DNA of 53,796 nt, taken from positions 17,203 through 70,998 of the forward strand of contig CAJFCJ010000112.1 of NCBI GenBank assembly GCA_904063045.1, given 5' to 3'. The notes under the pieces are model-generated. The model saw only the letters and a list, made by a program, of their open reading frames with translations. It was not told where the DNA came from and ran no database searches. The number at the start of each line of letters is the position of its first letter. The stretch's first letter is position 1. A program made the position numbers and the translations under genes. The DNA is from Dimorphilus gyrociliatus (lineage: Eukaryota > Animalia > Annelida). Positions 6,169 to 52,715 of the stretch are shown one piece after another.

Positions 6169-6730
6169 TATTATAACATTTATATCTGATACAAAGTCTG
6201 AGACTTTTGTGAAAACTTTCCATGAAGCTTTTTCAATGTATTTGATGATTTTTAAACTGCAAAATTTGGAAAAAGAGCAAAAACTTTTCCAACAATCATT
6301 ATAGGGAGATATTGATGTAAAAATATTGCTGTTTTATTATACCTCAAAACACAAAAAGCTACACAATAATGAATACCAAAATTTTCCTCACATTAATTTA
6401 ATCTTTAGGATGTTATTAGCAATAATTTTTTCATTTCTTAATGGTTAATATAAAAGACAAACAGACATGAAAAATTACCCTTTAAAAGTTTAAAACAATA
6501 TCATCTAATGTGAAAAAAAGACAAACTAAAATTTTACACCTTTTAAAAATTAATCTTTATCAGTGATAAAAAATTTCTAAAAAGCTATCTGATCTTGTTT
6601 TCTTCATCTACATTTAAATTACAAGACACCAAAAGAAGATATTTCATTATCTTTGAAGATTTTTGAAGATCTTCAAAAATAGTAAATAATACATTTCTCA
6701 TTTTAATATTATTACTCAATTATAATTTCA

Positions 6731-9438
6731 GAGTTGGGGTGCGAACGTACCTGGGTGTGAACGTACCCGGGTGCGAACGTACCCTGGGCGGGTGCGAACG
6801 TACCTGGGTACGTTCGCACCCTATTTTTATATTTATTTTATTTTTGAATTTTTGAATAAAAGATTTAGCTATAAATCTAAAAGTATGTATTTAAAAGACT
6901 AAATATTATACTAAAAAACAATAAAGCTTGACAAATGATATTTATGCTGGAGAGTAGATATGGGATGTCTGCATTAATAGATCAATTGATGTCAATTTGT
7001 TCAACTTGAAATCATCCCATAAATCAAAAATTTTCTTTTGGATGTCAATATACTTTTTCTTTTGATGTTTGTAAATCCTTTTTTCTGACAGTAATTTCTC
7101 ATAAACTGCAATCAACTCAGACTCTTTTTTTAGCTCATCAACCAGCATGTAAAAAGAACCTTTAGCAGGCAGCTTACTATTCATTCTTTGATGCCATCCT
7201 TCACAATCATTATTGGTCCTAATAGACAAACCAAAAACTGACCAGTTATTTGGTTTCCATAATTTATTTTTGATCCAGTTTGTTTGGAAGTATTGCAGCA
7301 GGTCCAAAAATCTATTTTTTTCACAAAGTTCTGCATTTATGCTGTCAAATGTTGGTTGAATAATATGTGCTGGCAAGAATGGCAGAGCCATCAATTTTCT
7401 GAAATCTTTCCAATCATTTCCTTTTTCTTTGTATTTCTTTACATAGCCAAGAGCCTATTCAATAATATAAGTTATTTAATAGATAATGTTATATATATTT
7501 GAATGTAACTGACTTGTATTTTCCTGTATACTGCTTGTGTGAAATGAAATACACAACCTTGAAATTCAGTGAGGGGATATACTTTTGATAATGCTTTCCA
7601 TAGTCCTTTTTCAAAATCCATTGTAATTCTTTTTGGATGAAAATCATTGATAAGATTGTTGATATGCTACAAAAAGCAACTTTATTTATCATCACTTTTG
7701 AAGAGATAATATGAAATATTTACTTGAAATGCTTGTAAGTATGCTTTGGTATGCTTTGAAGTCAGAAAAATAAAAACAAGAGGAACTTGCTTCATATCAC
7801 CACTCTTCTTAACAAATGAGTGAATAGTGACAAGTTGATAAAATGGTTCTTTTACAATCTTGAAAGTACCATCAATGTACCAACAGTTGGATTTTGATAA
7901 TAAATTCAGCTGATGGTTTGTTGCAAAGATTAAAATTCTTTCTCCATTTTCACAAATATCTTTCTGCAAAAATTCATCAGGCAAAAATGTTTCATCTAAA
8001 TTAAAGTTGTACACTTTAGGTTCCACTGGCCTAAACTTTTGTCTATTTGAGTTTGCCATTCTCTTCAAATAGTTGATATCAGGAAGACAAGTTGCATTGG
8101 GTTCATAGGATAGAAGAACTTTTTCAGCAATGCTTCTTCCAGATGTTTGATTATCACTTCTGCAAACAATTTTCAAATCTGTTTTCACTTTAATATCCAC
8201 TTCTAAATTCTTTTTTCTGTTGTGATTATGTTCCAAATTGCCTTTGAGAAATAAATTTCCATTTTGTCTTATTCTGGCCACACATCTTTTCTTCTTACTT
8301 CTCACACTGCACACCCAAATAGTACTTGATGGTGTTTTATGTTTAACAACAAAAGAATATCCATCATTCAGTAAAATGTCATGTCCCTTTCTACTTCCTC
8401 CTTTTACAATCTCAAAATCACTTTTTGTGGATGATTCACAATATTCTTCAGCATTCTCTTCAACTTCCTCCAAAGAGTCTAGGTCCATTGATTGGCATTC
8501 TGAAAGAACATGATTTTCATCCTCCAATATTGATTCCTCAACTGCAGCAATCTTATTTCTTTCATCAATAAAGCTTTCTTCAGAATTTACTTTGAATTGA
8601 TGAATTTCCAGATTAGTTAACTTCTTGAGCATGACAGTACATTTTCTTTTGTTACAAGGTTTGCAAATTGGTATGTTATGTGTTTCTATAAGAATATGTT
8701 AAAAAATATAATTACATGAAAGCTGATTAAAGAGTTACATACCTGTGCATTTCCTATGAATAAGATTCTTACAAAGGCTGCATTTCAAATATTTTTGCCT
8801 TCCATAAATTGTTGAATGACAATTGTGACATTTGAAAGCCATTTTTTAATCTTCAATCAAACGTAGATGGTTATCTAAAAATATTTCCAGTTATCAATAA
8901 ATTTCCTTTCCAAATATTCAAAATGGCTGAAATTTTATTTATGAAAAATATTCAGCTTTTTCACAATTGAAGATAGTATATTACATCAAAATATCATGAA
9001 TCAACAATCTCAATGATTAGATATAAATACTCACTTCTGTTGAAGCTTCCAAGAAGAACTTTGTCCAAATTTATTCAGTAAATATAGCTTTACTTTTGCA
9101 AGGATAAATATTCCAAGTGAAAGTTTATTTAATAAAACTATCACTATTAAAATGGCTGCTATTTCACTTTCAACAACATTTTCTTTTAAAGTAGTAATTT
9201 AATATTGATGGGATATGTATTCTATTTAATATCTGCATTCTATCAAATCAATATATTAACAAATATATAATGAAGGAACAGAAGGAAAAAAGGGTGTCAA
9301 TGTACATGTTTATTCAAAAATTCAAAAATAAAATAAATATAAAAATAGGGTGCGAACGTACCCAGGTACGTTCGCACCCGCCCAGGGTACGTTCGCACCC
9401 GGGTACGTTCGCACCCAGGTACGTTCACACCCGACTCC
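6731..9438 (-). mobile_element. Apparently intact autonomous Mutator/MULE (Phantom-like) DNA transposon
   Basis: ~130-bp TIRs built from tandem GGGTGCGAACGTACC units (6731-~6860, ~9310-9437) with GAG...CTC termini. Flanking duplication ATAATTTCA at 6722-6730 and 9439-9447 (9 bp plus one extra C, or 10 bp with one mismatch). Full transposase inside. Confidence 0.93.
6942..8842 (-). CDS. MULE transposase, 4 exons, ~575 aa: PHD-like finger, FLYWCH, DDE domain
   Basis: Hand-built exons 8842-8743, 8685-7724, 7666-7514 and 7454-6942 (GT-AG introns of 57, 57 and 59 nt) keep frame. Motifs: WYIDGTFK (D), ITMDFEKG (D), GCVFHFTQ (CxxH), RTNNDCEGWH (E), FLYWCH WVCSVRSKKKRC...HNH. Confidence 0.9.
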
Positions 9439-12400
9439 ATAATTTCACAATATTTGAACAATTTCTTAACAAATTTCTCAAATTTATTCTTTGTTCTTCA
9501 TTCAAATTACATGAATCCAAGTAAAGCTGTCTCAAAGTATTAGAAGATTTTTGAAGTGCATCACAAAAGTTGAAGCTTCCATTACCAATTCCAATATTGA
9601 CTCTCACTTCTAAATATTCTATATTAGAACAATTTCTTAAGAAATTTCCCAAATTTTTACTTTGTTCTTCATTCAATTGACATGAATACAAGTGCAGCTG
9701 TCTCAAAGTATTAGAAGATTTTTGAAGTGCATCACAAAAGTTGAAGCTTCCATTACCAATTGCAATATTGCAATTCACATTTAAAATTTCTATATTAGAA
9801 CAGTTTCTTAAGAAATTTCCCAAATTTTTACTTTGTTCTTCATTCAAATTACATAACATCAAGTGAAGCTGTCTCAAAGTATTAGAAGATTTTTGAAGTG
9901 CATCACAAAAGTTGAAGCTTCCATTACCAATTGCAAAATTGTAATTCACATTTAAAATTTCTATATTAGAACAGTTTCTTAAGAAATTTCCCAAATTTTT
10001 ACTTTGTTCTTCATTCAATTCACATGAATGCAAGTGAAGCTGTCTCAAAGTATTAGAAGATTTTTGAAGTGCATCACAAAAGTTGAAGCTTCCATTACCA
10101 ATTGCAATATTGTCTCCCACTTCTAAATATTCTATATTAGAACAATTTCTTAAGAAATTTCCCAAATTTTTACTTTGTTCTTGATTCAATTTACATGAAA
10201 ACAAGTTCAGCTGTCTCAAAGTATTAGAAGATTTTTGAAGTGCATCACAAAAGTTGAAGCTTCCATTACCAATTGCAATATTGTAATTCACATTTAAAAT
10301 TTCTATATTAGAACAGTTTCTTAAGAAATTTCCCAAATTTTTACTTTGGTCTTCATTCAATTTACATGAATCCAAGTGCAGATGTCTCAAAGTATTAGAA
10401 GATTTTTCAAGTGCATCACAAAAGTTGAAGTTTCCATTACCAATTGCAATATTGCTTTGCACTTCTAAATATTCTATATTAGAACAGTTTCTTAAGAAAT
10501 TTCCCAAATTTTTACTTTGTTCTTCATTCAATTGACATGAATACAAGTGCAGCTGTCTCAAAGTATTAGAAGATTTTTCAAGCCCATCCAAAATAGCAAA
10601 TAATCCATTACCAATTGCAATATTGTAACTCAAATTTAAAATTTCTATATTACAACAATTTCTTAAGAAATTTCCCAAATTTTTACTTTGTTCTTCATTC
10701 AAATTACATGAAGCCAAGTAAAGCTGTCTCAAAGTATTAGAAGATTTTTGCAGTGCATCACAAAAGTTGAAGCTTCCATTACCAATTGCAATATTGTAAT
10801 TCACATTTAAAATTTCTATATTAGAACAGTTTCTTAAGAAATTTCCCAAATTTTTACTTTGTTCTTCATTCAATTTACATGAATCCAAGTGAAGCTGTCT
10901 CAAAGTATTAGAAGATTTTTGAAGTGCATCACAAAAGTTGAAGCTTCCATTACCAATTGCAATATTGTAATTCACATTTAAAATTTCTATATTAGAAAAG
11001 TTTCTTAAGAAATTTCCCAAATTTTTACTTTGGTCTTCATTCAATTTACATGAATCCAAGTGCAGATGTCTCAAAGTATTAGAAGATTTTTCAAGTGCAT
11101 CACAAAAGTTGAAGTTTCCATTACCAATTGCAATATTGCTTTGCACTTCTAAATATTCTATATTAGAACAGTTTCTTAAGAAATTTCCCAAATTTTTACT
11201 TTGTTCTTGATTCAATTCACATGAAGCCAAGTGCAGCTGTCTCAAAGTATTAGAAAATTTTTGAAGTGCATCACAAAAGTTGAAGTTTCCATTACCAATT
11301 GCAATATTGCTTCCCACATCTAAATATTCTATATTAGAACAATTTCTTAAGCAATTTCCCAAATTTTTACTTTGTTCTTCATTCAAATTACATGAAGCCA
11401 AGTGCAGCTGTCTCAAAGTATTAGAAGATTTTTCAAGTGCATCACAAAAGTTGAAGCTTCCATTACCAATTGCAATATTGCTTCCCACATCTAAATATTC
11501 TATATTAGAACAGTTTCTTAAGAAATTTCCCAAATTTTTACTTTGTTCTTCATTCAATTGACATGAATACAAGTGCAGCTGTCTCAAAGTATTAGAAGAT
11601 TTTTCAAGTCCATCCAAAATAGCAAATAATCCATTACCAATTGCAATATTGTAACTCAAATTTAAAATTTCTATATTACAACAATTTCTTAAGAAATTTC
11701 CCAAATTTTTACTTTGTTCTTCATTCAAATTACATGAAGCCAAGTAAAGCTGTCTCAAAGTATTAGAAGATTTTTGAAGTGCATCACAAAAGTTGAAGCT
11801 TCCATTACCAATTGCAATATTGCTTCCCACTTCTAAATATTCTATATTAGAACAGTTTCTTAAGAAATTTCCCAAATTTTTACTTTGTTCTTCATTCAAT
11901 TCACATGAAAACAAGTGCAGCTCTCTCAAAGTATTAGAAGATTTTTGAAGTGCATCACAAAAGGTGAAGCTTCCATTACCAATTGCAATATTGTAATTCA
12001 CATTTAAAATTTCTATATTAGAACAGTTTCTTAAGCAATTTCCCAAATTTATACTTTGTTCTTCATTCAAATTACATGAAGCCAAGTGAAGCTCTCTCAA
12101 AGTATTAGAAGATTTTTGAAGTGATTGACAAACATTAAATATCCCATTTCCCACATTTATATTTCCTTGAAGATTTAATGTTTTAATTGATGAAGAATCC
12201 TTTATGAGATGTTCAATTTCCCAACAGTGTTGTTCATTTAAGTTAGAGTTAGGGAAACTTACTACTGTTATGTCTTGTCCTAATTCTATTGATTCAGCTA
12301 AGTCATTTATTTTCTTGTCAGTATTATTCTGTGTAGAGAGTTCTACAATTTCATTGCTTTCATTTTCAAAATACTTTTTTAGTTTTAAAAATTTTGTCAT

Positions 12401-13111
12401 TTGAAGCTCATCAAAATATTTTATATCATTTTCTTTTATTTTATCCAAACTGTGATGAAAAATGTAGTTTGTGTGTATATTATTAAAGATTTCTAAGGTT
12501 GTTTTTAAGGAAGTTTCGAAAAGACTTTCCAATTTGTCACTTTGATTTGTAAATGTTTTAAAAAAGCTATCTCTCAAATCATTTAATTGAATATATTTGT
12601 GTCTTATATATTCAAATTCCAATTTCAAGTTAATCATTGCTTTCCTTTCATAGTCATCAATTTTTGCTAAAATATTTTTTGTACTTTCTTGGTCTTTTAA
12701 GAAGACTGTATTCAGTTTTTCTTTTAATTTTGCCAATTTGATCATTGAAATTGTAGAGCATTTTTCATGATTTTCATCCAAACAGAAAATACATAAATTT
12801 TCAATATTATGTGTTTTACAATACATTAATCCCTCCTTACCATGATTGTTGCAAAGGTTTTTTTCTTGACATTCTATTGATTGTTCCACTCGATTTTTTT
12901 GTATTTGATCAAATTGGCCAAAAGGTATTTTGACTTGGTTTCTGCAAGTTGGACAGGTTATTTCATGATTGTGAACTGGTAATTGTTGTACACATTTGAA
13001 GCAAAAGGTATGTTGACAAGGAAATATCCTAGGATCATTCCCTATCCAGGATTCTAAACAAATTGCACATTCTAAAGTTTGCTGATTTATAACATATTGT
13101 AAGGTAGCCAT
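9425..13111 (-). CDS. TRIM-like E3 ligase (RING, B-box, coiled-coil) with ~16 C-terminal RI-type LRR units, intronless, ~1228 aa
   Basis: RING CAIC...PCQHTFCFKC...CPTC; B-box CNNH...YCKTH...CIFC...HEKC; helical linker; then 15 full 57-aa units plus one partial unit. The last 4 codons and the stop (WSRV*) come from the MULE TIR. Confidence 0.9.
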   Translation of the reverse strand: MATLQYVINQQTLECAICLESWIGNDPRIFPCQHTFCFKCVQQLPVHNHEITCPTCRNQVKIPFGQFDQIQKNRVEQSIECQEKNLCNNHGKEGLMYCKTHNIENLCIFCLDENHEKCSTISMIKLAKLKEKLNTVFLKDQESTKNILAKIDDYERKAMINLKLEFEYIRHKYIQLNDLRDSFFKTFTNQSDKLESLFETSLKTTLEIFNNIHTNYIFHHSLDKIKENDIKYFDELQMTKFLKLKKYFENESNEIVELSTQNNTDKKINDLAESIELGQDITVVSFPNSNLNEQHCWEIEHLIKDSSSIKTLNLQGNINVGNGIFNVCQSLQKSSNTLRELHLASCNLNEEQSINLGNCLRNCSNIEILNVNYNIAIGNGSFTFCDALQKSSNTLRELHLFSCELNEEQSKNLGNFLRNCSNIEYLEVGSNIAIGNGSFNFCDALQKSSNTLRQLYLASCNLNEEQSKNLGNFLRNCCNIEILNLSYNIAIGNGLFAILDGLEKSSNTLRQLHLYSCQLNEEQSKNLGNFLRNCSNIEYLDVGSNIAIGNGSFNFCDALEKSSNTLRQLHLASCNLNEEQSKNLGNCLRNCSNIEYLDVGSNIAIGNGNFNFCDALQKFSNTLRQLHLASCELNQEQSKNLGNFLRNCSNIEYLEVQSNIAIGNGNFNFCDALEKSSNTLRHLHLDSCKLNEDQSKNLGNFLRNFSNIEILNVNYNIAIGNGSFNFCDALQKSSNTLRQLHLDSCKLNEEQSKNLGNFLRNCSNIEILNVNYNIAIGNGSFNFCDALQKSSNTLRQLYLASCNLNEEQSKNLGNFLRNCCNIEILNLSYNIAIGNGLFAILDGLEKSSNTLRQLHLYSCQLNEEQSKNLGNFLRNCSNIEYLEVQSNIAIGNGNFNFCDALEKSSNTLRHLHLDSCKLNEDQSKNLGNFLRNCSNIEILNVNYNIAIGNGSFNFCDALQKSSNTLRQLNLFSCKLNQEQSKNLGNFLRNCSNIEYLEVGDNIAIGNGSFNFCDALQKSSNTLRQLHLHSCELNEEQSKNLGNFLRNCSNIEILNVNYNFAIGNGSFNFCDALQKSSNTLRQLHLMLCNLNEEQSKNLGNFLRNCSNIEILNVNCNIAIGNGSFNFCDALQKSSNTLRQLHLYSCQLNEEQSKNLGNFLRNCSNIEYLEVRVNIGIGNGSFNFCDALQKSSNTLRQLYLDSCNLNEEQRINLRNLLRNCSNIVKLWSRV
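9450..12120 (-). repeat. Coding tandem array of 171-bp (57-aa, 28+29) LRR units
   Basis: Unit SSNTLRQLHLxSCxLNEEQSKNLGNFLRNCSNIExLxVxxNIAIGNGSFNFCDALQK is repeated with very high nucleotide identity. Confidence 0.97.
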
Positions 13112-13243
13112 TTTTTTATTGATCATGGATTTTTGTATTTTTAGTTTCAGTTTAACATATATCAAAATATATTTTTTTTTAATTTCTTTTATTTTTTAAG
13201 AATGTAAAATTTTTAGTATACAATATATATAAAATTTTAAAAT

Positions 13244-13400
13244 ATTGTAATCACAAAGTATTTTAATTGGTTATTGCTAAAACCTGTGTTTAACTAGTAA
13301 AATTATAATATCAATAAAATTATGAAATAATTGTAATCACAAAGTATTTCAAATGGTTATTGCTAAAACCTGGTGTTGAACTAGTAAAATTAAAATAACC
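13244..13400. repeat. ~86-bp direct tandem duplication upstream of the TRIM-LRR gene
   Basis: ATTGTAATCACAAAGTATTT...GGTTATTGCTAAAACCTG...AACTAGTAAAATT occurs at 13244 and again at 13330. Confidence 0.8.
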
Positions 13401-13909
13401 AGGTTATAAAGGATCTGTGTAACTCTATGATATTTTTGTAATTCAAACATAATTGATTTTACTTGATTCTTTTTAAATCTACTACTAAATATTTAAGTTG
13501 AATTATTTCTTTTTAAACAAGATAGTTAAAAAAGAATTTATATCACAGACTATGGTTATGCATAGAATTTAAAAATTTTGAGTTTAGAGTAGAAATTAAT
13601 CAACAAAACACCAGCATTTCATGCAAAGAATATGTGTTGAATAAATTGAGCTTCTAGTTCTAAACAAGCTAGTTTAAACAACTAGCTGACTGTTAGAAAA
13701 CTGAACTATCAACTGTTCATTTCGTAGGGTTTATATACTCTTTTAAAAGGTTGATAGTTCACAAATTTCAATGTTCACAAAGCAAAAGTAACATTTTAAG
13801 ACAAAGAAAAGTTCTAAACATGCCCATCTTTTTATTGTTTTCATCTTCTAAATAATAGTTTAATTTCAAAGGTTGGAGAGTTGCATAAGATGGAATAATT
13901 TGAATAGCA

Positions 13910-14200
13910 CAAATCCAACAATCAAGAAAACTTGTTGATTGTATATTTGACCATTTGTATATTCTACTTTAATAATGATATTCAATTGATTGAGTTAGTA
14001 ATTTTAGCATCAGCATATATGGAGGAAGTATATCTGATTAATCCACGTTAAGTAGAACAGTATTGTGTATACAATGTGTATGCACTGCCCTACATGAAAC
14101 TAGGTCAATACTGCTTATCTCTATCAGTGCTATCTGCATAGCACAATACTGGTTCAATACTACTTATCTATTGTAGAGTATAGCTGACGAATGTGTGTGT
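13910..14200 (+). repeat. Dispersed repeat shared with 45250-45700 (upstream of the NLR)
   Basis: CCAACAATCAAGAAAAC...ATATTCTACTTTAATAATGATATTC...CAGTGCTATCTGCATAG.ACAATACTGGTTCAATACTACTT is present at both sites. Confidence 0.8.
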
Positions 14201-14599
14201 ACATTTATGATTATTAAAATGGTTAAAGCATAACTCTTATGATAATAATATTCTAAAAAGAAATTGATTAAAGATAACATATTCTTCCTAAAATAGAAAG
14301 TAAAAGTAGAGCTGTACTAAAAATTTCAAATATTAAAATAGCAAAAGTGGGTTTGGACATTTCATCTTGGACATTTTGCCCCTGAATGGAATATTATTTC
14401 TCCCTTTTCCCTGGACAAATTAATCCTTTATCAGGGGGTTGTTGAAAACGCCCACTGTGCCTAACTATTACATCAAAACTACAAAAGTTGTATAATGACT
14501 TTAAAAGTAATAATACTTTTAGTTGAAATAATAGAGACAGTGAAAAAATTATTTTTTACATGTGTATTAAATTGTAATAGAATTATTTAGAGTAGAAAC

Positions 14600-14986
14600 A
14601 TTGACAGCAGACACATTTCTACCTGATAAATTGCTGAACATTTTTCCAAAAGCTCACCAGCACAAATATCACTATTTTGAAATTCATCCCAAATTTCATA
14701 ATTATTCTACTGTATGTTGGTATAGTTTTTTTTTTGTATCCTACAAATCTTCTTTTCTGATAGTAGCTTTTGATAAACATCAATTAGATCACTTTCTCTC
14801 TTTAATTCATCTACAGTGCAATAAAATGAAGAATTTTCTTGTAAATTTCTATTAAATTTGTTGTGGAAACCTTCCAAGTCATTATTTGTTGGAATAGCTC
14901 TCTTAAACACTGACCAATTATTTGGTAACCAGAGAATATTGTATATCCATGTGTCCTCCATGTATTTAACAAGATCACGTAATTTG
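14600..14986 (-). mobile_element. Relic of a related MULE (last exon)
   Basis: WLPNNWSVFKRAIPTNNDLEGFHNKFN...DELKRESDLIDVYQKLLSEKKI parallels the catalytic-E exon of the intact transposase. Confidence 0.85.
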
Positions 14987-16813
14987 TCTTCTAATACTTT
15001 GAGACAGCTGCACTTGTATTCATGTCAATTGAATGAAGAACAAAGTAAAAATTTGGGAAATTTCTTAAGAAACTGTTCTAATATAGAATATTTAGATGTG
15101 GGAAGCAATATTGCAATTGGTAATGGAAGCTTCAACTTTTGTGATGCACTTGAAAAATCTTCTAATACTTTGAGACAGCTGCACTTGGCTTCATGTAATT
15201 TGAATGAAGAACAAAGTAAAAATTTGGGAAATTGCTTAAGAAATTGTTCTAATATAGAATATTTAGATGTGGGAAGCAATATTGCAATTGGTAATGGAAA
15301 CTTCAACTTTTGTGATGCACTTCAAAAATTTTCTAATACTTTGAGACAGCTGCACTTGGCTTCATGTGAATTGAATCAAGAACAAAGTAAAAATTTGGGA
15401 AATTTCTTAAGAAACTGTTCTAATATAGAATATTTAGAAGTGCAAAGCAATATTGCAATTGGTAATGGAAACTTCAACTTTTGTGATGCACTTGAAAAAT
15501 CTTCTAATACTTTGAGACATCTGCACTTGGATTCATGTAAATTGAATGAAGACCAAAGTAAAAATTTGGGAAATTTCTTAAGAAACTTTTCTAATATAGA
15601 AATTTTAAATGTGAATTACAATATTGCAATTGGTAATGGAAGCTTCAACTTTTGTGATGCACTTCAAAAATCTTCTAATACTTTGAGACAGCTTCACTTG
15701 GATTCATGTAAATTGAATGAAGAACAAAGTAAAAATTTGGGAAATTTCTTAAGAAACTGTTCTAATATAGAAATTTTAAATGTGAATTACAATATTGCAA
15801 TTGGTAATGGAAGCTTCAACTTTTGTGATGCACTTCAAAAATCTTCTAATACTTTGAGACAGCTTTACTTGGCTTCATGTAATTTGAATGAAGAACAAAG
15901 TAAAAATTTGGGAAATTTCTTAAGAAATTGTTGTAATATAGAAATTTTAAATTTGAGTTACAATATTGCAATTGGTAATGGATTATTTGCTATTTTGGAT
16001 GGGCTTGAAAAATCTTCTAATACTTTGAGACAGCTGCACTTGTATTCATGTCAATTGAATGAAGAACAAAGTAAAAATTTGGGAAATTTCTTAAGAAACT
16101 GTTCTAATATAGAATATTTAGATGTGGGAAGCAATATTGCAATTGGTAATGGAAGCTTCAACTTTTGTGATGCACTTGAAAAATCTTCTAATACTTTGAG
16201 ACAGCTGCACTTGGCTTCATGTAATTTGAATGAAGAACAAAGTAAAAATTTGGGAAATTGCTTAAGAAATTGTTCTAATATAGAATATTTAGATGTGGGA
16301 AGCAATATTGCAATTGGTAATGGAAACTTCAACTTTTGTGATGCACTTCAAAAATTTTCTAATACTTTGAGACAGCTGCACTTGGCTTCATGTGAATTGA
16401 ATCAAGAACAAAGTAAAAATTTGGGAAATTTCTTAAGAAACTGTTCTAATATAGAATATTTAGAAGTGCAAAGCAATATTGCAATTGGTAATGGAAACTT
16501 CAACTTTTGTGATGCACTTGAAAAATCTTCTAATACTTTGAGACATCTGCACTTGGATTCATGTAAATTGAATGAAGACCAAAGTAAAAATTTGGGAAAT
16601 TTCTTAAGAAACTTTTCTAATATAGAAATTTTAAATGTGAATTACAATATTGCAATTGGTAATGGAAGCTTCAACTTTTGTGATGCACTTCAAAAATCTT
16701 CTAATACTTTGAGACAGCTTCACTTGCATTCATGTGAATTGAATGAAGAACAAAGTAAAAATTTGGGAAATTTCTTAAGAAACTGTTCTAATATAGAAAT
16801 TTTAAATGTGAAT
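14987..16813 (+). repeat. Orphan LRR array (10.7 units), inverted copy of the TRIM-LRR repeats, no RING/B-box upstream
   Basis: Same 171-bp units. Contains a 6-unit (1026-bp) higher-order duplication (identical antisense ORFs at 15025 and 16051). Starts abruptly after a MULE relic and runs into the N gap. Confidence 0.92.
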
Positions 16814-17532
16814 NNNNNNNNNNNNNNNNNNNNNNNNNNNNNNNNNNNNNNNNNNNNNNNNNNNNNNNNNNNNNNNNNNNNNNNNNNNNNNNNNNNNNNN
16901 NNNNNNNNNNNNNNNNNNNNNNNNNNNNNNNNNNNNNNNNNNNNNNNNNNNNNNNNNNNNNNNNNNNNNNNNNNNNNNNNNNNNNNNNNNNNNNNNNNNN
17001 NNNNNNNNNNNNNNNNNNNNNNNNNNNNNNNNNNNNNNNNNNNNNNNNNNNNNNNNNNNNNNNNNNNNNNNNNNNNNNNNNNNNNNNNNNNNNNNNNNNN
17101 NNNNNNNNNNNNNNNNNNNNNNNNNNNNNNNNNNNNNNNNNNNNNNNNNNNNNNNNNNNNNNNNNNNNNNNNNNNNNNNNNNNNNNNNNNNNNNNNNNNN
17201 NNNNNNNNNNNNNNNNNNNNNNNNNNNNNNNNNNNNNNNNNNNNNNNNNNNNNNNNNNNNNNNNNNNNNNNNNNNNNNNNNNNNNNNNNNNNNNNNNNNN
17301 NNNNNNNNNNNNNNNNNNNNNNNNNNNNNNNNNNNNNNNNNNNNNNNNNNNNNNNNNNNNNNNNNNNNNNNNNNNNNNNNNNNNNNNNNNNNNNNNNNNN
17401 NNNNNNNNNNNNNNNNNNNNNNNNNNNNNNNNNNNNNNNNNNNNNNNNNNNNNNNNNNNNNNNNNNNNNNNNNNNNNNNNNNNNNNNNNNNNNNNNNNNN
17501 NNNNNNNNNNNNNNNNNNNNNNNNNNNNNNNN
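16814..17532. other. Assembly gap (719 N)
   Basis: Run of N. Confidence 1.
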
Positions 17533-19721
17533 TAAATAAATTTCAGCCATTTTGAATATTTGGAAAGGAATTTATTGATAACTGGAAATGATTTTTAGAT
17601 AACCATCTACATTTGATTGAAGATTAAAAAATGGCTTTCAAATGTCACAATTGTCATTCAACAATTTATGGAAGGCAAAATATTTGAAATGCAGCCTTTG
17701 TAAGAATCTTTTCATAGGAAATGCACAGGTATGTAACTCTTTACATCAGCTTTCATGTAATTATATTTTTTAAATATTCTTATAGAACACATAAATACCA
17801 ATTTGCAAACCTTGTAACAAAGAAAATGTACTGTCATGCTCAAGAAGTTAACTAATCTGGAAATTCATCAATTCAAAGTAAATTCTGAAGAAAGCTTTAT
17901 TGATGAAGAAATAAGATTGCTGGCAGTTGAGGAATCAATATTGGAGGATGAAAATCATGTTCTTTCGAGAATGCCATCAATGGACTAGATCTTTGGAGGA
18001 AGTTGAAGAGAATGCTGAAGAATATTGTGAATCATCCACAAAAAGTGATTTTTGAGATTGTAAAAGGAGGAAGTAGAAAGGGACATGACATTTTACTGAA
18101 TGATGGATATTCTTTTGTTGTTAAACATAAACACCATCAAGTACTATTTGGGTGTGCAGTGTGAGAAGTAAGAAGAAAAGATGTGTGGCAGAATAAGACA
18201 AAATGGAATTTATTTCTAAAGGCAATTTGGAACATAATCACACAGAAAAAGAATTTAGAAGTGGATATTAAAGTGAAAACAGATTTGAAAATTGTTTGCA
18301 GAAGTGATAATCAAACATCTGGAAGAAGCATTGCTGAAAAAGTTCTTCTATCCTATGAACCCAATGCAACTTGTCTTCCTGATATCAACTATTTGAAGAG
18401 AATGGCAAACTCAAATAGACAAAGTTTAGGCCAGTGGAACTAAAGTGTACAACTTTAATTTAGATGAAACATTTTTGCCTGATGAATTTTTGCAGAAAGA
18501 TATTTGTGAAAATGGAGAAGAATTTTAATCTTTGCAACAAACCATCAGCTGAATTTATTATCAAAATCCAACTGTTGGTACATTGATGGTACTTTCAAGA
18601 TTGTAAAGAACCATTTTATCAACTTGTCACTATTCACTCATTTGTTAAGAAGAGTGGTGATATGAAGCAAGTTCTCTTGTTTTTATTTTTCTGACTTCAA
18701 AGCTACCAAAGCATACTTACAAGCATTTCAAGTAAATATTTCATATTATCTCTTCAAAAGTGATGATAATAAAGTTGCTTTTTTGTAGCATATCAACAAT
18801 CTTATCAATGATTTTCATCCAAAAAGAATTACAATGGATTTTGAAAAAGGACTATGGAAAGCATTATCAAAAGTATATCCCTCACTGAATTTCAAGGTTG
18901 TGTATTTCATTTCACACAAGCAGTATACAGGAAAATACAAGTCAGTTACATTCAAATATATATAACATTATCTATTAAATAACTTATATTATTGAATAGG
19001 CTCTTGGCTATGTAAAGAAATACAAAGAAAAAGGAAATGATTGGAAAGATTTCAGAAAATTGATGGCTCTGCCATTCTTGCCAGCACATATTATTCAACC
19101 AACATTTGACAGCATAAATGCAGAACTTTGTGAAAAAATAGATTTTTGGACCTGCTGCAATACTTCCAAACAAACTGGATCAAAAATAAATTATGGAAAC
19201 CAAATAACTGGTCAGTTTTTGGTTTGTCTATTAGGACCAATAATGATTGTGAAGGATGGCATCAAAGAATGAATAGTAAGCTGCCTGCTAAAGGTTCTTT
19301 TTACATGCTGGTTGATGAGCTAAAAAAGAGTCTGAGTTGATTGCAGTTTATGAGAAATTACTGTCAGAAAAAAGGATTTACAAACATCAAAAGAAAAAGT
19401 ATATTGACATCCAAAAGAAAATTTTTGATTTATGGGATGATTTCAAGTTGAACAAATTGACATCAATTGATCTATTAATGCAGACATCCCATATCTACTC
19501 TCCAGCATAAATATCATTTGTCAAGCTTTATTGTTTTTTAGTATAATATTTAGTCTTTTAAATACATACTTTTAGATTTATAGCTAAATCTTTTATTCAA
19601 AAATTCAAAAATAAAATAAATATAAAAATAGGGTGCGAACGTACCCAGGTACGTTCGCACCCGCCCAGGGTACGTTCGCACCCGGGTACGTTCACACCCA
19701 GGTACGTTCGCACCCCAACTC
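17533..19721 (+). mobile_element. Near-identical copy of the 6731-9438 MULE (5' end lost in the gap, many 1-nt indels)
   Basis: Reverse complement of ~8941-6731; ends with the TIR CCCCAACTC directly against NLR LRR sequence. Confidence 0.93.
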
Positions 19722-22700
19722 GAGTCCAACACATATCACTTTAAAGCCATTCCTCATCTTTCTATTATATGAGAAATCAACATTGTCCAATGCTGAACAG
19801 TGTTTAAATGTTTCTCCTAAACTTTGAGCTTGTTATCATTCAAATCACACAACAAGATTAATTGTTTTCATAGACATTGAAGAAGATTTGAGCCCATCAC
19901 ATATCACTTTAAAGCCATTCCACATTTTCTATTACATGAGAAATCAACATTCTCCAATGCTGAACAGTGTTTAAATGTTTCTCCTAAACTTTGAGCTTGT
20001 TCATCATTCAAATCACACTCACAAGTTTAATTGTTTTCATAGACATTGAAGAAGATTTGAGCCATCACATATCCTTTAAAGCCATTCCCATGTTACTATT
20101 CTCTGAGAAATCAACATTCTCCAATGCTGAACAGTGTTTAAATGTTTCTCCTATACTTTGAGCTTGTTCATCATTCAAATCACACTCACCAAGTTTAATT
20201 ATTTTCAGAGACATTGAAGAAGATTTGAGCCCATCACATATCACTTTAAAGCCATTTCCCATGTTACTATTCCATGAGAAATCAACATTCTCCAATGCTG
20301 AACAGTGTTTAAATGTTTCTCCTAAACTTTGAGCTTGTTCATCATTCAAATCACACCAATGAAGATTAATTGTTTTCATAGACATTGAAGAAGATTTGAG
20401 TCAACACATATCACTTTAAAGCCATTCCTCTAATAGTATTTAAATGTTTCTCCTAAACTTTGAGCTTGTTCATCATTCAAATCACACCCAAAAAAATTAA
20501 GTGTTTTCATAGACATTGAAGAAGATTTGAGCCCATCACATATACCTTTAAAGCCATTTCCCATGTTACTATTCCCTGAGAAATCAACATTCTCTAATGC
20601 TGAACAGTGTTTAAATGTTTCTCCTAAACTTTGAGCTTGTTCATCATTCAAATGACACCCATCAAGTTTAATTATTTTCAGAGACATTGAAGAAGATTTG
20701 AGTCCACACATATCACTTTAAAGCCATTCCTCATCTTTCTATTATATGAGAAATCAACATTGTCCAATGCTGAACAGTGTTTAAATGTTTCTCCTAAACT
20801 TTGAGCTTGTTTATCATTCAAATCACACCAACCAAGATTAATTGTTTTCATAGACATTGAAGAAGATTTGAGCCCATCACATATCACTTTAAAGCCATTC
20901 CACATCTTTCTATTACATGAGAAATCAACATTCTCCAATGCTGAACAGTGTTTAAATGTTTTTCCTAAACTTTGAGCTTGTTCATCATTCAAATCACACT
21001 CACCAAGTTTAATTGTTTTCATAGACATTGAAGAAGATTTGAGCCCATCACATATCCCTTTAAAGCCATTCCCCATGTTACTATTCTCTGAGAAATCAAC
21101 ATTCTCCAATGCTGAACAGTGTTTAAATGTTTCTCCTAAACTTTGAGCTTGTTCATCATTCAAATCACACCAACCAAGATTAATTGTTTTGATAGACATT
21201 GAAGAAGATTTGAGCCCATCACATATCCCTTTAAAGCTATTCCCCGTGTTTTTATTAAATCTGAAATCAACATCCTCCAATGCTGAACAGTGTTTAAATG
21301 TTTCTCCTAAACTTTGAGCTTGTTCATCATTCAAATCACACCAACCAAGATTAATTGTTTTCATAGACATTGAAGAAGATTTGAGCCCATCACATATCAC
21401 TTTAAAGCCATTCCGCATCTTTCTATTACATGAGAAATCAACATTCTCCAATACCGAACAGTGTTTAAATGTTTCTCCTAAACTTTGAGCTTGTTCATCA
21501 TTCAAATCACACCAACCAAGATTAATTGTTTTGATAGACATTGAAGAAGATTTGAGCCCATCACATATCCCTTTAAAGCTATTCCCCGTGTTTTTATTAA
21601 ATCTGAAATCAACATCCTCCAATGCTGAACAGTGTTTAAATGTTTCTCGTAAACTTTGAGCTTGTTCAGCATTGAAATCACACCAACCAAGATTAATTGT
21701 TTTCATAGACATTGAAGAAGATTTGAGCCCATCACATATCCCTTTAAAGCCATTCCCCATGTTTTTATTCAATGACAAATCAACATTCTCCAATTCTGAA
21801 CAGTGTTTAAATGTTTCTCCTATACTTTGAGCTTGTTCATCATTCAAATCACACTCACCAAGTTTAATTGTTTTCATAGACATTGAAGAAGATTTGAGCC
21901 CATCACATATACCTTTAAAGCCATTTCCCATGTTACTATTCCCTGAGAAATCAACATTCTCCAATGCTGAACAGTCTTTAAATGTTTCTCCTAAACTTTG
22001 AGCTTGTTCATCATTCAAATCACACTCACCAAGTTTAATTGTTTTCATAGACATTGAAGAAGATTTGAGCCCATCACATATCCCTTTAAAGCCATTCCCC
22101 ATGTTACTATTCTCTGAGAAATCAACATTCTCCAATGCTGAACAGTGTTTAAATGTTTCTCCTAAACTTTGAGCTTGTTCATCATTCAAATCACACCCAT
22201 CAAGTGTAATTGTTTTCATAGACATTGAAGAAGATTTGAGTCCAACACATATCACTTTAAAGCCATTCTGCATCTTTCTATTACATGAGAAATCAACATT
22301 CTCCAATGCTGAACAGTGGTTAAATGTTTCTCCTAAACTTTGAGCTTGTTCATCATTCAAATCACACCCACTAAGATTAATTGTTTTCATAGACATTGAA
22401 GAAGATTTGAGTCCAACACATATCACTTTAAAGCCATTCCTCATCTTTCTATTACGTGAGAAATCAACATTCTCCAATGCTGAATAGTATTTAAATGTTT
22501 CTCCTAAACTTTGAGCTTGTTCATCATTTAACTGACACCAATTAAGATTAATTGTTTTCATAGACATTGAAGAAGATTTGAGTCCATCACATATCCCTTT
22601 AAAGCCATTCCTCATGTTTCTATTACATGAGAAATCAACATTCTCCAATGCTGAACAGTGTTTAAATGTTTCTCCTAAACTTTGAGCTTGTTCATCATTT

Positions 22701-25700
22701 AACTGACACCAATTAAGATTAATTGTTTTCATAGACATTGAAGAAGATTTGAGTCCATCACATATGACTTTAAAGCCATTCCCCATGTTACTATTACATG
22801 AGAAATCAACATTCTCCAATGCTGAACAGTGTTTAAATGTTTCTCCTAAACTTTGAGCTTGTTCATCATTTAACTCACACTGGCAAGCTTAATTGTTTTC
22901 ATAGACATTGAAGAAGATTTGAGTCCATCACATATCACTTTAAAGCCATTCCCCATGTTACTATTCATGATAAATCAACATTCTCCAATGCTGAACAGTG
23001 TTTAAATGTTTCTCCTAACCTTTGAGCTTGTTCTTCATTAACTCACACCTACCAAGATTAATTGTTTTCAATGAGAATGAAGAAGATTTGAGTCCATCAC
23101 ATATCCCTTTAAAGCCATTCCCATGTTTTATTCCATGAGAAATCAACATTCTCCAATGCTGAACAGTGTTTAAATGTTTCTCCTAAACTTTGAGCTTGTT
23201 CATCATTTAACTCACACTGGGCAAGCTTAATTGTTTTCATAGACATTGAAGAAGATTTGAGTCCATCACATATCACTTTAAAGCCATTCCCCATCTTACT
23301 ATTCCATGATAAATCAACATTCTCCAATGCTGAACAGTGTTTAAATGTTTCTCCTAAGCTTTGAGCTTGTTCATCATTTAACTCACACCAGGCAAGGTTA
23401 ATTGTTTTCATAGACATTGAAGAAGATTTGAGTCCATCACATATCCCTTTAAAGCCATTTCCCATGTTTTCATTCCCTGAGAAATCAACATTCTCCAATG
23501 CTGAACAGTGTTTAAATGTTTCTACTAGAGATTGAGCTTGGTCATCATCCAAATCACACCCATGAAGTTTAATTGTTTTGATAGAGTTTAAAGAAGATTT
23601 AAGCCCATCGCATATGTCTTTAAAACTGTTTCCCATGTGGTTGTTTTTTGATAGGTTAACATATTTTAATGATGCACATTTTTTTAAGTTTTTACCTAAT
23701 ATGTTTGAATTTTGACTATTTAAGTTACAATCTACAATCACAATATGGCTTAAGGTATGTTTAAATGAGTCGAAATTAAAATATGTATGAGCTTTTTTAT
23801 AACTTTCAAATATTAAAGTTTTCATTTTGGTACATTTTCCTAGAAGTTCAGGCAGAGTTCTTTGCTGTTTTTCAAAGTTGGTGTAAGATTTAATATTAAA
23901 TATCTCCATTGTTTGGCACAATATTTCAAAAACATCATTTAACGTTTCTTCATAATTTGCACTATTTTTTATATTATATAATTCTACTGGAAAATGACAC
24001 ATGGTAACAAATTTTTTTTTCAATGCCCATTTTAAGCACTCCAAGGTGTTTTTGTTCAAGTTGGCAATCGCACTTTCATCAACTGTCAGTTTTGCTCCTG
24101 TGGCATTGAAAGAAACTTGCAGTTTTTCATTACTGAAAGCTTTAATCTGAATAACATTTGATGTTGAGTTTATTATCAAAATATGAATGGAGTGATAAAT
24201 CTTGGATATATAATGAATAGTCAAAAAGAATTTGTTTGTGAGATTTATTATTGAGCTATTTGTATAACCAATTTTTTAAACGGTAATGCTCCTTTTAAAT
24301 TTTAAAACATTAAAAATTTGTCCAAATCAATTGCAGAGACATTTTGTTTTTCAGAATTAAATCATTCAGATTATGGTGTGTCTTTCAATATATTTTAGTG
24401 ATGCCTCTTTGTAAATATTTCTGAATTGTATGATGATTATTCCAAATGTCACTTGAATCAACCAATTGGTTTGGTATTTATTACTAGAAATTTCTAATTT
24501 CTCAATTTGCATTTTTGATAGTATACCACTTTTACCATAATTCTTTTTTTTGATGAAAACTTTAATATTATGTACAATCAAATATGTAATATTAGTTGAT
24601 GTTATCAATGCCAGCAGTTCTTTAAATATCATTTCATAGGAAAAATGAAAATCTGTATTCTTTATTTTAATGTTTGTTAGGAATGGGGAGTGTTGTGCAA
24701 GTTGTTTCAGAAGAAAACTAATATTTATTTTGGTCTTGTAAATGTAAATATCCAATAAACCACTCCCTCTGCTTTCTAATAAAAGGCTAACTATAGTATC
24801 ATTTAAATGTTCATTAGTTAAATATTCTTTTGGTTGCTTTCTAAACCATTTGATAGATAATTTTGTACACTTTCACTACAATCAAACATTTGTTGTGCAA
24901 TTTGAGATGAGAGTAGAATATTTTGAAATATTGATTGAGAATATTGTTTAACAAAATCTAAAGTATTATATATATTTATATTGTTATTTTCTTTAAACAA
25001 TTCATCCAAAGTTTTTTCATCATTCAATGAAGTTGTCAATGTCCAAATTGTTTCTTTGGGTTTCTTCTCAAACTCTTTTATCAGATATTTAGCTGCAAAA
25101 TATTCTTGAAATGATAAATGATAGAGTTGTAACTCTTTTTTCTTGTTTTCAGTAGGAATGACATCAATTAATCCTTTAAGACAAAATTTTAATTTTTTTC
25201 TCTTTGTCTAAATAAGAGTCAAGTATGATTTTACTTTTTGAAAGATTAATGAAACATAACTTGTATATATTATCTATGTTTGAATCACTTTTGTTTATGG
25301 TCTCTAGATTTTTGTCTTGTACTATACTAACAAAATCTTCATATATTTGAAAAGGAGATTTGTTAAAAATATTCCCTTTCTCTTTCCAAATATAAAAAGA
25401 ATCATTGCTAGAAGTGGTACTTTACAGAGACATTGTATCTTTGGATATTTCTTGACAACTCTTTCAATAAATTCATTGGCCACATTATTAGTATCAGTAT
25501 AAAAACATTTTATAAAAAAAGTTTTCATTTGGCTTTTATTCCAACCTGTTAATTCAAATGCAAGGTCACAAGTAGTTATAATTTGTTTACCTTTCCATTT
25601 TCTTGCCCAAATGGCAGTTGGAATATTGCAATTTGCTCCATTGATTATATCATTAATTTATGTGTTGGAAGATGAAACTCATCTGCTCCATCTAGTAATA

Positions 25701-26459
25701 ATATGATGTCTTTTTTCTTTTCTTTAAAAAACGATTCAATAATATGCTCATTTATATAATCAATATTTTTGAAATTTTGTTGGTATATCTCTTCATAAAT
25801 TGTTGTGTTTTTTGAACATTTCTGAGCATAATGAATATACATAATTTTTCATGATCAATGTTCCATCTTTCATTTGCCCACTTATGAATTAAATTTTTCA
25901 TATGAACACTTTTTCCTATTCCAGGCTCTCCTTGAATTAAAACCTTATTGAAATCTGTATAAAAAATTTCATAGAAATTTTCATAATCAATTTCAGTATC
26001 AATAAGTTGTGAGTCAATGATGTCTTTTTGAATGATTTCTGATATTTTGATAGATGTAACAATATCAGTAAGTTTAGCTTCTTTAGTTTCACCAAATGGT
26101 AAAAGTTTAATTGTTGTGAAATCTTTTCTTCTTTCTTCTTTTGTATCACAGATTAACCTTTTCCACACAAATTCTGGATCACTTAAGTTTTTTGCCAATT
26201 CTTTGCTCAAGTCATCCATTTCTTGTAAAATTTCAATAATATCTATTAACTTACAGGCATTTAGTATTTTGAGTAGCTCTTCAATAGCTGCATGTTTGTG
26301 TGTTTTATACTGAATTTCCAGAATGTCTCTTAAGTCTTTTTTTATAATTTGTTTTGAAACTAAATGTATGGCAAATTGTTCAAATGTAAATGTTTGGTTT
26401 AATAACATTAGTAGTTTTTCATTATAATAATTAAAACATAGCTGATGCATAGAGTCCAT
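19692..26459 (-). pseudogene. NLR copy B (death-fold-like N-terminus, NACHT, ~22 LRR units), frameshifted as assembled
   Basis: Reverse-complement paralog of 45907-52715. ATG at 26459, Walker A IQGEPGIGKS, LLDGADE, CKVPLL. LRR array ~23590-19722, truncated by the MULE TIR. Multiple single-base indels split it into ORF fragments, which may be real or sequencing error. Confidence 0.88.
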
Positions 26460-26668
26460 TCTGATCAATAATCTTCAAGTACCTTTTGTATCTTGGTATT
26501 TGGAATCTTTCTGTAAAAATTAACATTGTTTAAATTAAAAATGTTTGTCATATTGGAAAAGAAAAATGGTGAATTTGACAGTTCTATACACTTTGCAAGT
26601 TTTAACTAAAAGGGGTTTTCTAATGTATATGGTTTAATACAGAACAAATATATATATATGTATATATA

Positions 26669-43662: not shown

Positions 43663-45906
43663 TTTTTAATTTATTTGGTTCAAAAATCTGATTATTTGTG
43701 AGTACGATTCATTAGTTAACAAGCTTCAACTGCAATGCATTATTGAAATTTGTAAAATGAATTTAACACTGATACCTGTAATATCAATGTGGTTTTTAAC
43801 ACAGTTATACACCTAAAACAATTTATTCCATGGTTATATTAAACCCAAAATCAATTTTTGTTATTATATAATACAAAAGCAATATGAAAGTAGGAATAGC
43901 TCATTGTAAATCATTAATAATTTATATTATCCATTTTCCAATGAACCTCTATGACATTTTAATAAACACTAATATAAGAATGTTGACAATTAAAACCAGT
44001 TATACCAACATTGAAGGTATTTTTTTTGATTGATAGGTCTATTATTCCTATTTTCTATCTTGTCAAATGAGTACCTGGGTACATTCTCACCCATTTTTTT
44101 TTAGTTTTATTTATGGATTTTTTATGAAATTGTTTTTTTATAGAGGTGTATACAGAAATCCGCATAAATTTTGGTACACCCTAAATTTTGATAGGCCAAA
44201 TTTAAAATAGCGGTCATAAGTCATAATCTTTAATCACTTTAAAGTTTGTGATATATTTGAAGGACTTCAACGATCATCTAAAGTCTCAAAACGTCTTCAT
44301 CTGAGTTGTTTTCAAACCTCACAAAAAAATGTGTTGTAATACTACAAAGAATAGATGAAGAAAAAGAGCAAAGCGAAAATGAATGCAAAGAGGAGTTGGA
44401 ATTAACATTTTCTTTTGATAGTATAAAGAGCTTTGCTGACTGTTCAATGGAAGTTCAAAGTGTAGTGAATGATGAGGATACGTATGGGTTAGGGTTAGGG
44501 TAAGAGCACTCAGTTGTGTACATTTTCTATCGCATCCTATATATATATATATATGCTTATCCACTTCAGTTTGATATAAATGCTGTTTAGAAAACTGTAG
44601 ACTCAAGCCAATACTATTTAATACGTATGCTTAACAATAGCATTCTGTGTTGGGTACACACAATACTGTTATAGGTACATTGGAGGCTTGATCGTATGAA
44701 CATAAAACTCTGACAAACAAAGGTAATGAATTTAGCTTTAACTAAAGAACTACATTAGTCTTACTATAACAACCTAACAACATTAATTTAGTGGCCAGCT
44801 TGTTAATTTTTCGACTAGTTCCAACTTTGACATTCAAAAAATGATTTTAATGTTACGAAAATTGTTGTACATTGTGAGCAATAAGAGGATTGTTAGTTAG
44901 TCTCTGAGTAGCAAACCATTAGACCTAACAATAGTGTGTTTATTGTCTTTGGCATATACTTAACTAGTGAAACTACAATTAACAGTTTGTTGACATTATA
45001 TTTGGCTGACATTTTAGAAAGTTTATCAGCTTCCTGGTGCTTAAATTCTGTAAAGTATTTGTATGTAAAGTATGTCTTTCAATGTTAATATTGAAAGATA
45101 TTTTGAGTTTTTCTTTAGAAATCTTCTTTAAAAATATTCAATTCAAGTGTTGTAAAGATTTGACTGTTGGGCTGATAAAATACTAGCTCAATGCTACTTG
45201 CTTACCACAGAACAAGTCTCATAAATAAAGGATACAAAATTTTAATAGGACAAGTCCAACAATCAAGAAAACATGTAGATTGTATATTTAACCATTTTAT
45301 ATTCTACTTTAATAATGATATTCAGTTGATTGCATTAGTAAATTTAGCATCAGTATATCTGATTAATGCATGTTAAGAAGAACAATATTGTGTATACAAT
45401 ACTGTTGAATAGTGAACATAACCCAAACTTAAAATTTAAGCATAATAGATATTTAATTGAACTGCTTTTAGTTCAAAATCATAAATTTATGGATTATTAA
45501 ATTGTAATATTAATGCTAGGTTGCAAATAGCAATATTCTGTATATAATTTAATAGGTTTTATTGCCGAACATTGTATATGCACTGCCATATACTAGGTCA
45601 ATACTGCATATCTTGATCAGTGCTATCTGCATAGTACAATACTGGTTCAATACTACTTCCCTATTATAGGCTATAGCTGTTGAATGTATGTGTACATACA
45701 AACTAACCTTATTTGTTCTGTATTGTACCATATACATTAGAAAAGCCCTTTTAGTTACAACTTGCAAAGTGTATAGAACTGTCAAATTCACCAGTTTAAT
45801 CTTTATTTTCCAATATGAAAAACATTTTTAATTGAAACAATGTTAATTTTTCCAGAAAGATTCCAAATACCAAGATACAAAAGGTACTTGAAGATTATTA
45901 ATCACA

Positions 45907-51900: not shown

Positions 51901-52715
51901 CAAAGTTTAGGAGAAACATTTAAACACTGTTCAGCATTGGAGAATGTTGATTTCTCAGGGAATAGTAACATGGGGAATGGCTTTAAAGGTATATGTGATG
52001 GACTCAAATCTTCTTCAATGTCTATGAAAACAATTAAACTTGATGGGTGTCATTTGAATGATGAACAAGCTCAAAGTTTAGGAGAAACATTTAAACACTG
52101 TTCAGCATTGGAGAATGTTGATTTCTCATGGAATAGGGAGATGGGGAATGGCTTTAAAGGTATATGTGTTGGACTCAAATCTTCTTCAATGTCTATGAAA
52201 ACAATTAAACTTCATGGGTGTTATTTGAATGATGAACAAGCTCAAAGTTTAGGAGAAACATTTAAACACTGTTCAGCATTGGAGGATGTTGATTTCAGAT
52301 TGAATGAAAACATGGGGAATAGCTTTAAAAGGATATGTGATGGGCTCAAATCTTCTTCAATGTCTATGAAAACAATTAATCTTGGTTGGTGTTATTTGAA
52401 TGATGAACAAGCTCAAAGTTTAGGAGAAACATTGAAACACTGTTCAGCATTGGAGAATGTTGATTTCTCATGGAATAGTAACATGGGGAATGGCTTTAAT
52501 GGGATATGTGATGGACTCAAATCTTCTTCAATGTCTATGAAAACAATTACAGTTGTTGAGTTATTTGAATGATGAACAAGCTCAAAGTTTAGGAGAAACA
52601 TTTAAACACTGTTCAGCATTGGAGAATGTTGATTTCTCATATAATAGAAGATAGGAATGGCTTTAAAGTGATATGTGTTGGACTCGAGTTGGGGTGCGAA
52701 CGTACCTGGGTGTGA
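45907..52715 (+). CDS. NLR copy A: death-fold-like N-terminus, NACHT, ~22-23 RI-type LRR units (open to 50145, then indel-broken; ends in the MULE TIR)
   Basis: 1412-aa ORF with Walker A LIQGEPGIGKS, Walker B IILLLDGADE, CKVPLL and the winged-helix motif YHLSFQEYFAAKYL. 57-aa LRR units run from ~48790 to 52685. The ~95-aa helical N-terminus is called death-fold by position and pattern only. Confidence 0.9.

Follow-up and report, generated by a model that had tools for sequence, protein, structure and literature searches.

We analyzed a 53,796-nt stretch of the genome of the annelid Dimorphilus gyrociliatus (Annelida; assembly GCA_904063045.1, contig CAJFCJ010000112.1, positions 17,203-70,998 of the forward strand; hereafter the window, to whose first letter all unlabelled coordinates refer). 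It contains a gene for a RING-finger protein with a long leucine-rich repeat (LRR) array and, on the opposite strand, a second, headless array of the same repeats, here termed the orphan. The gene is a RING plus ribonuclease-inhibitor/NLR-type LRR gene of D. gyrociliatus, and, judged by the diagnostic sites of its repeat units, it appears to record recent in-register unequal exchange among near-identical units, whichever origin is accepted for the orphan. The orphan repeats the LRR block of the gene from U4 onward and is not an independent set of cassettes. The gene is a new instance of known repeat dynamics, and it is a serious possibility that the second array is a product of the assembly. 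The features on which these conclusions depend are as follows.

9425-13111, minus strand: intronless gene for a protein of 1228 amino acids, an uninterrupted open reading frame (ORF) with its ATG at 13111 and its stop at 9425
9440-12115, minus strand: LRR array of the gene, units U1 to U16 (Tandem Repeats Finder: period 171, 15.6 copies, 90% matches)
11945-12115 and 9380-9550, minus strand: end units U1 and U16, respectively
10235-10747, minus strand: block U9-U10-U11, an apparent copy of U3-U7 (10919-11773)
10406-10576, minus strand: U10, a putative hybrid unit
14987-16813, plus strand: the orphan, a headless array of 10.7 units in the order U4-5-6-7-8-9-4-5-6-7-13

Each unit of 171 nt encodes 57 amino acids, which comprise one LRR of 28 and one of 29 residues with the motif LxxLxLxxC/NxL; U16 is a natural short terminal unit. 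Ribonuclease-inhibitor/NLR-type LRR arrays are built of 57-residue double units, in which repeats of 28 and 29 residues alternate. The gene resembles them in this alternation, in the motif, and in the strands and helices predicted to recur every 28-29 residues by an AlphaFold single-sequence model (mean predicted local distance difference test score, pLDDT, of only 62; secondary structure alone was used). It differs from them in lacking introns in the array and in having units with a much higher DNA similarity than those of vertebrate RNH1 and NLR genes. The units are approximately 90% identical at every shift; ordinary unit pairs have 4-32 differing sites per 171, and some pairs differ at 0-1 of 171 nt.

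The most similar units carry the evidence for exchange. A first-pass annotation of this DNA had read U3 as equal to U9, U11 as almost U7, and U10 as the N-half of U4 joined to the C-half of U6, and the site-by-site comparison bears out all three relations. U3 and U9 encode identical protein sequences and differ at a single site (position 165), and U7 and U11 also differ at one site (position 92). U10 has the U4 state at the five diagnostic sites of its N-side (5, 34, 35, 43, and 52) and the U6 state at the four of its C-side (114, 118, 119, and 146), with a single switch located in the 61-nt identical tract between sites 52 and 114. Because U10 combines the N-side states of U4 with the C-side states of U6, the U9-U10-U11 block is, as far as these sites tell, a recent copy of U3-U7 minus two units' worth of sequence, namely the C-part of U4, U5, and the N-part of U6. 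We propose that the process is ordinary homologous exchange, unequal but in register, between 171-nt units that are nearly identical; it would alter the unit order and, within the gene, would have generated U9-U10-U11 from U3-U7.

The variation among units is concentrated in few codons. Nine codons per unit show three or more different residues (codons 8, 10, 12, 15, 38, 40, 41, 49, and 51), and the ratio of nonsynonymous to synonymous differences per site (pN/pS) among units is 2.77 at these hypervariable codons versus 0.75 at the other codons, a descriptive ratio as the units are not independent lineages. In the low-confidence structural model, seven of the nine hypervariable codons fall into two predicted strands (unit positions 6-16 and 34-43), and the rest are adjacent to them. 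The exchange points are located in the conserved stretches that separate the two variable β-strand patches, and therefore the binding strand of each LRR would be reassorted as a block. Recombination of this kind would shift whole binding strands, and the order and the number of units would change in the germline. The earlier proposal of in-register recombination that reassorts binding strands is supported in so far as it would explain U10, the U3-U7/U9-U11 block, and the order of units in the orphan.

Comparable repeat dynamics have been described for fungal NLR proteins, whose WD40, ANK, and TPR repeats are highly conserved within a gene, are shuffled, are polymorphic in number, and are under positive selection at the binding face (PMC4986451). 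The array studied here is similar to these NLR/STAND repeats, for instance those of the Podospora nwd/HNWD genes (PMC4986451, and the work of Paoletti and of Chevanne cited therein), in unit identity within the gene (approximately 85-99%), in the shuffling or exchange of units and changing repeat number, and in having few hypervariable codons per unit, which lie on the binding face and are enriched in amino-acid changes. In the annelid gene, these features appear as high unit identity, single-switch mosaics in identical tracts, and hypervariable codons with an amino-acid excess. Entire units set the version in the gene apart from that in the orphan, and alleles, paralogs, and assembler paths are all possible sources of this difference. 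The differences from the fungal genes concern the repeat type, which is the LRR here, whereas no LRR motifs were found in fungal NLRs (PMC4986451), the annelid host, and the N-terminal domain, which is a RING finger instead of a NACHT or NB-ARC ATPase.

The orphan lies on the strand opposite to the gene and constitutes the final 1.8 kb of a contig, which terminates at a scaffold gap of 719 N. Its units O2, O3, O4, O6, O7, O8, O9, and O10 are identical, with 0 mismatches each, to U5, U6, U7, U9, U4, U5, U6, and U7, respectively; O5 equals U8 with one mismatch, O11 (120 nt) equals U13, and the three mismatches between O1 and U4 are all flank bases outside the array sequence. The assignment of O11 depends on the two nucleotides that distinguish U13 from U8 (positions 34 and 43), and a single nucleotide decides that O6 is U9 rather than U3. 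When compared with itself at a 6-unit shift, the orphan is 99.8% identical with an exact run of 714 nt. Both the unit order and the 6-unit higher-order repeat that had been reported for the orphan are therefore present in the DNA.

No private 31-mers were found within 14987-16813: all of them also occur in the gene, and private 31-mers are limited to those that reach into the flank to the left of 14987. Relative to the gene, the orphan shows 0 indels over 1827 nt, and it can be tiled by five exact gene segments of 848, 168, 120, 604, and 87 nt, the maximal exact matches of which overlap by 45, 167, 119, and 83 nt. Overlaps of 45-167 nt between exact segments fit homology-guided switches. As deduced from the unit sequences, two in-register unequal exchanges in identical tracts would suffice to turn the gene order into the orphan order. 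In the first step, an exchange between the N-part of U10 and U4 would re-create the block U9-U4-U5-U6-U7; in the second step, an exchange in the 83-nt tract common to U7/U8 and U12/U13 would join U7 to U13. These exchanges were presumably meiotic or mitotic unequal crossovers or conversions.

The protein encoded by the gene consists of an N-terminal RING finger, a Cys/His-rich stretch, a probably helical region, and the 16 LRR double units. The RING finger scores above the Pfam cut-off (zf-RING_2, 32 bits versus 27.3) and is shared with the TRIM (RING/B-box/coiled-coil) proteins, but the B-box of the latter was not found in a Pfam search of residues 1-332 with E-values up to 1, the Cys/His-rich stretch being visible by eye only. 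A whole-protein database search returned only paralogs with approximately 30% identity, named as D. gyrociliatus proteins and with loci in GCA_904063045.1, and no self-hit; a word-index protein search with the N-terminal 345 residues gave no match in the allowed length range. The gene seems to be absent from the deposited protein set, or else to be annotated there at a very different length. Three paralog loci on other scaffolds (L001-L003) contain no homogeneous 171-nt arrays. Beside one paralog, P0003, there is an inverted and decayed fragment that comprises approximately two units of this LRR type (L001 12927-13221, minus strand), which has a frameshift and stops and no gap nearby. The same locus, which belongs to another scaffold of the same assembly, contains an inverted duplicate of 427 nt (L001 1-425 and 2603-3029, 97.7% identical) flanking an N gap (1114-2159).

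The DNA for the assembly came from pooled adult females and was sequenced as PacBio RS II reads, which were assembled with PBcR, followed by polishing with Quiver and Pilon, haploid reduction with HaploMerger2, and scaffolding with SSPACE-LongRead; the assembly size is approximately 78 Mb versus an estimated 71-74 Mb (PMC7854359). Since contigs were scaffolded with SSPACE-LongRead, the N runs in the window are scaffold joins between contigs. Read evidence was taken from the Logan short-read contigs (k = 31) of four runs, X1, X2, and X3 among them; the orders of the gene and the orphan cannot be told apart by any 31-mer, nor therefore by these contigs. Over the coding part of the gene, X1 contigs have a depth of 460-700 and end near 13130, a coverage pattern that looks like transcription. 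At three positions in the gene head (12213, 12265, and 12725), all four runs read another base than the assembly, and approximately 6 sites differ between the assembly and the major haplotype in 1.2 kb of head and upstream DNA, whereas X2 contigs match 13990-14487 exactly. This shows that the assembled sequence is here a real but minor haplotype, approximately 0.5% from the major one, with uncorrected errors as an alternative at 12213, 12265, and 12725. The region between the gene and the gap includes the following elements.

13166-14986, unstranded: spacer between gene and orphan, including the promoter side of the gene, an insertion, a high-copy repeat, and a transposase relic
13411-14444: insertion of 1034 nt, absent from one X2 contig
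13522-14297: high-copy repeat within the insertion, with a depth of 17,000-54,000
14602-14982, minus strand: C-terminal relic of a Mutator-type transposase, with 51% amino-acid identity to the transposase of element A (see below)
14986/14987: junction J1, at which the relic is cut and the LRR array begins at position 3 of U4
16814-17532, unstranded: scaffold gap, which hides the orphan's 3' end as well as one of the ends of element B

The segment 13411-14444 is an insertion polymorphism: an X2 contig of single-copy depth joins 13410 to 14445, and other X2 contigs fit the interior of the segment exactly. An in-frame ATG at 14960-14962, which lies 27 nt upstream of the orphan in antisense of the transposase relic, may open a headless LRR-only ORF. 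The two sides of J1 have no shared homology, and the junction has the form of the window up to 14986 followed by the reverse complement of the window up to 11599. A false read overlap cannot create a junction whose sides share no sequence, and J1 thus needs a real or a chimeric molecule. Its form is compatible with a fold-back artefact, with a join between the reference haplotype and an inversion haplotype in which 11600-14986 is flipped, and with an inverted duplication in cis.

One Mutator-like element lies at the end of the gene and another beyond the gap that follows the orphan.

6731-9438, plus strand: Mutator-like element A, with a perfect 9-bp target-site duplication (ATAATTTCA) at 6722-6730 and 9439-9447
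17533-19721, minus strand: Mutator-like element B, the reverse complement of A 6731-8941, which abuts the 3' end of the LRR array of the neighboring NLR gene

Element A is positioned exactly at the stop codon of the gene. The ORF would end in NIVKL-stop without the element and ends in NIVKLWSRV-stop with it; the insertion only extends the protein end, by four residues, and therefore the array of the gene is not truncated by element A. The first approximately 750 nt of element B after the gap (17533-18250) contain about 19 single-base indels relative to A and almost no isolated substitutions, a pattern by which the broken transposase frame at the start of B is probably a consensus error and not decay; such an indel-rich start is typical of a poorly supported contig end. 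Beyond element B, the window contains two NLR genes in inverted orientation to each other, both with LRR arrays of 171-nt units (19722-26650 and 45710-52685); their non-LRR parts have 98.3% substitution identity. Each of the two genes is trailed by a near-identical Mutator-like copy, B and C (from 52686 onward), respectively, and copies A and C have just 2 substitutions in 1.1 kb. A single large inverted duplication of the element together with an LRR array was considered and rejected, given that the three elements A, B, and C are young and nearly the same in sequence and that element A represents a simple insertion flanked by a target-site duplication of its own; the junction between B and the orphan falls within the gap. 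The gap size of 719 was not used as evidence either, as approximately 661 or 832 versus 1002 would be expected and neither alternative fits cleanly.

We give an about even chance to the orphan being real DNA. It would then be either a partial duplicate that is very young, inverted, and devoid of a promoter, or the point at which the assembler connected a rearranged haplotype with the reference haplotype. The consensus of the orphan is well supported, as it has no indels in its 1827 nt versus approximately 19 in 750 nt at the post-gap contig start, and the fragment at L001 12927-13221 is a headless LRR fragment elsewhere in the genome that has no gap. Several observations weigh against a real second array. 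First, the orphan is situated at a contig end and ends at a scaffold gap. Second, X2 and X3 contigs match the window up to 14988 and then run into sequence that extends the reading frame of the relic; this continuation is alignable with intact transposase and thus appears to be an uninterrupted transposase copy. Among the contig pieces listed, which leave out 427 others, none crosses J1 into LRRs. Third, one X1 contig and one X2 contig join 14987 to 13912 on the opposite strand; the 14987 side of this join coincides exactly with J1, and its 13830-13912 side fits at only approximately 95% and may be another repeat copy. Fourth, position 14936 is C in all X2 contigs and A in the assembly. Finally, zero divergence from the gene is equally predicted by an artefact, and the other duplicates in the window are older, for example the NLR pair with its 98.3% identity. 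Contigs near J1 reach a depth of 1078-1203, about double the 433-663 of single-copy sequence, so the relic has further copies in the genome and the divergence of contigs at J1 is no proof that J1 is false. A search of the window for the loose-end sequences from J1 and elsewhere found none of them; the alternative continuations therefore lie beyond the window. It is unlikely that the orphan represents the array of the major haplotype, because the assembly and the major haplotype have about 6 differences in 1.2 kb, yet the orphan is without a private variant.

We regard it as possible, if somewhat doubtful, that the orphan is instead an assembly artefact. A chimeric or fold-back PacBio read at the contig end would have fused the gene's own array, in opposite orientation, with the spacer; the mosaic order would have arisen when reads were corrected and polished within the repeat, and the scaffolder would have put this tail beside element B, since reads from the gene plus element A are compatible with B as well. 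Long-read assemblies of pooled heterozygous DNA can contain duplicated contig ends at scaffold gaps. The 1.8-kb tail resembles them as an exact nearby copy, with zero private 31-mers, that terminates at an N run in an assembly exceeding the estimated genome by approximately 5-7 Mb, but it differs from them in that J1 leads to unique DNA inside the contig without homology, which is not produced by plain overlap error. J1 has the fold-back form, and contigs of two runs diverge exactly at it; however, a random ligation chimera would rarely link points 3.4 kb apart, and a missed-adapter palindromic read is rejected, as it would give the reverse complement of the spacer right after the turning point, not a 3.4-kb jump. 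As U3 is nearly U9, the path U4..U9-U4..U7 forms a closed walk in the repeat graph, whereas the unit order of the tail is unlike that of the gene and so the tail is not a simple re-read of the same molecule. The pooling of DNA from many animals, the use of PBcR, HaploMerger2, and SSPACE-LongRead, and the excess assembly size are in line with such an error, but genome amplification was not used for sequencing (PMC7854359). Moreover, a tail derived from a single read should retain indel errors like those of the post-gap contig start, and it has none. The designation of these arrays as a direct record of shuffling goes too far for the orphan, which ends at a scaffold gap, holds no private sequence, and may be an assembly product or a second haplotype.

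The first-pass annotation had also considered the headless array as a donor reservoir, conceptually similar to VLR cassettes or antigenic-variation donors. In lampreys and hagfish, the VLR gene of the germline lacks parts, which somatic assembly supplies from hundreds of diverse partial cassettes. The D. gyrociliatus locus is similar in that LRR modules lie beside an LRR receptor gene, and the first-pass annotation had proposed that such modules are reassorted; however, this gene is an uninterrupted ORF of 1228 codons with 16 units and a natural stop, and there is one neighboring array, which shares all its 31-mers with the gene, in place of a set of diverse cassettes. Silent donors, such as the VSG pseudogenes of trypanosomes, vls of Borrelia, and pilS of Neisseria, carry variants that are absent from the expression site. 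The orphan is like them a promoter-less partial copy near an expressed gene, but it has zero private 31-mers, and its host is a free-living animal. A donor must hold variants that the gene lacks; because the orphan holds none and the gene is a complete ORF, a donor reservoir is unsupported, and the idea of a cassette library is without support whether the orphan is real DNA or an artefact.

It is very improbable that the orphan serves as a functional reserve, either as a silent inverted copy that trades units with the expressed gene by gene conversion or through recombination between the arms that flips the 3.4-kb segment, by which distal units of the orphan would come in frame behind the head of the gene. 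Being inverted, 3.4 kb apart, in the same register, and essentially identical, the arms would be a good substrate for both processes, and the ATG at 14960 is in frame; yet the orphan holds no variant absent from the gene and adds order but no new strands, flipped forms were not seen in the short-read contigs of the examined stretch, and the gene is complete on its own. The comparable fragment beside the paralog has decayed, with frameshifts and stops. The orphan is presumably without function, and the decayed fragment on the P0003 side suggests that orphans of this kind are left to rot. Capture by a transposon, in which the adjoining Mutator-like element would have carried or created the orphan via Pack-MULE-like transduplication or aberrant transposition involving the ends of two copies, is scarcely credible: three LRR arrays of the window are flanked by Mutator-like copies that are very young and near-identical, and J1 lies within the relic of a related transposase, but A is a simple insertion whose 9-bp duplication is perfect, the LRRs lie outside its ends, J1 is not at a terminal inverted repeat, and the junction between the orphan and element B lies in the gap and is unreadable.

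Should the orphan be a product of the assembly, then exact LRR-array copies that adjoin gaps in this assembly are not to be taken for biology. There is a very slim chance that the inverted array is real and that continuing exchange maintains its identity with the gene, with flipping or conversion letting one locus present alternative LRR orders behind a single RING head; this would constitute a germline, or even a somatic, switch for an innate receptor in an animal. If both arrays are real, then the gain, loss, and reordering of whole units would outpace point mutation at this locus, with at least 2-3 structural changes versus 0-1 base change. In that case, the regime known from fungal NLR repeats would operate here in LRRs that are attached to a RING finger, and the locus would be a convenient one for measuring repeat-number polymorphism in an animal.

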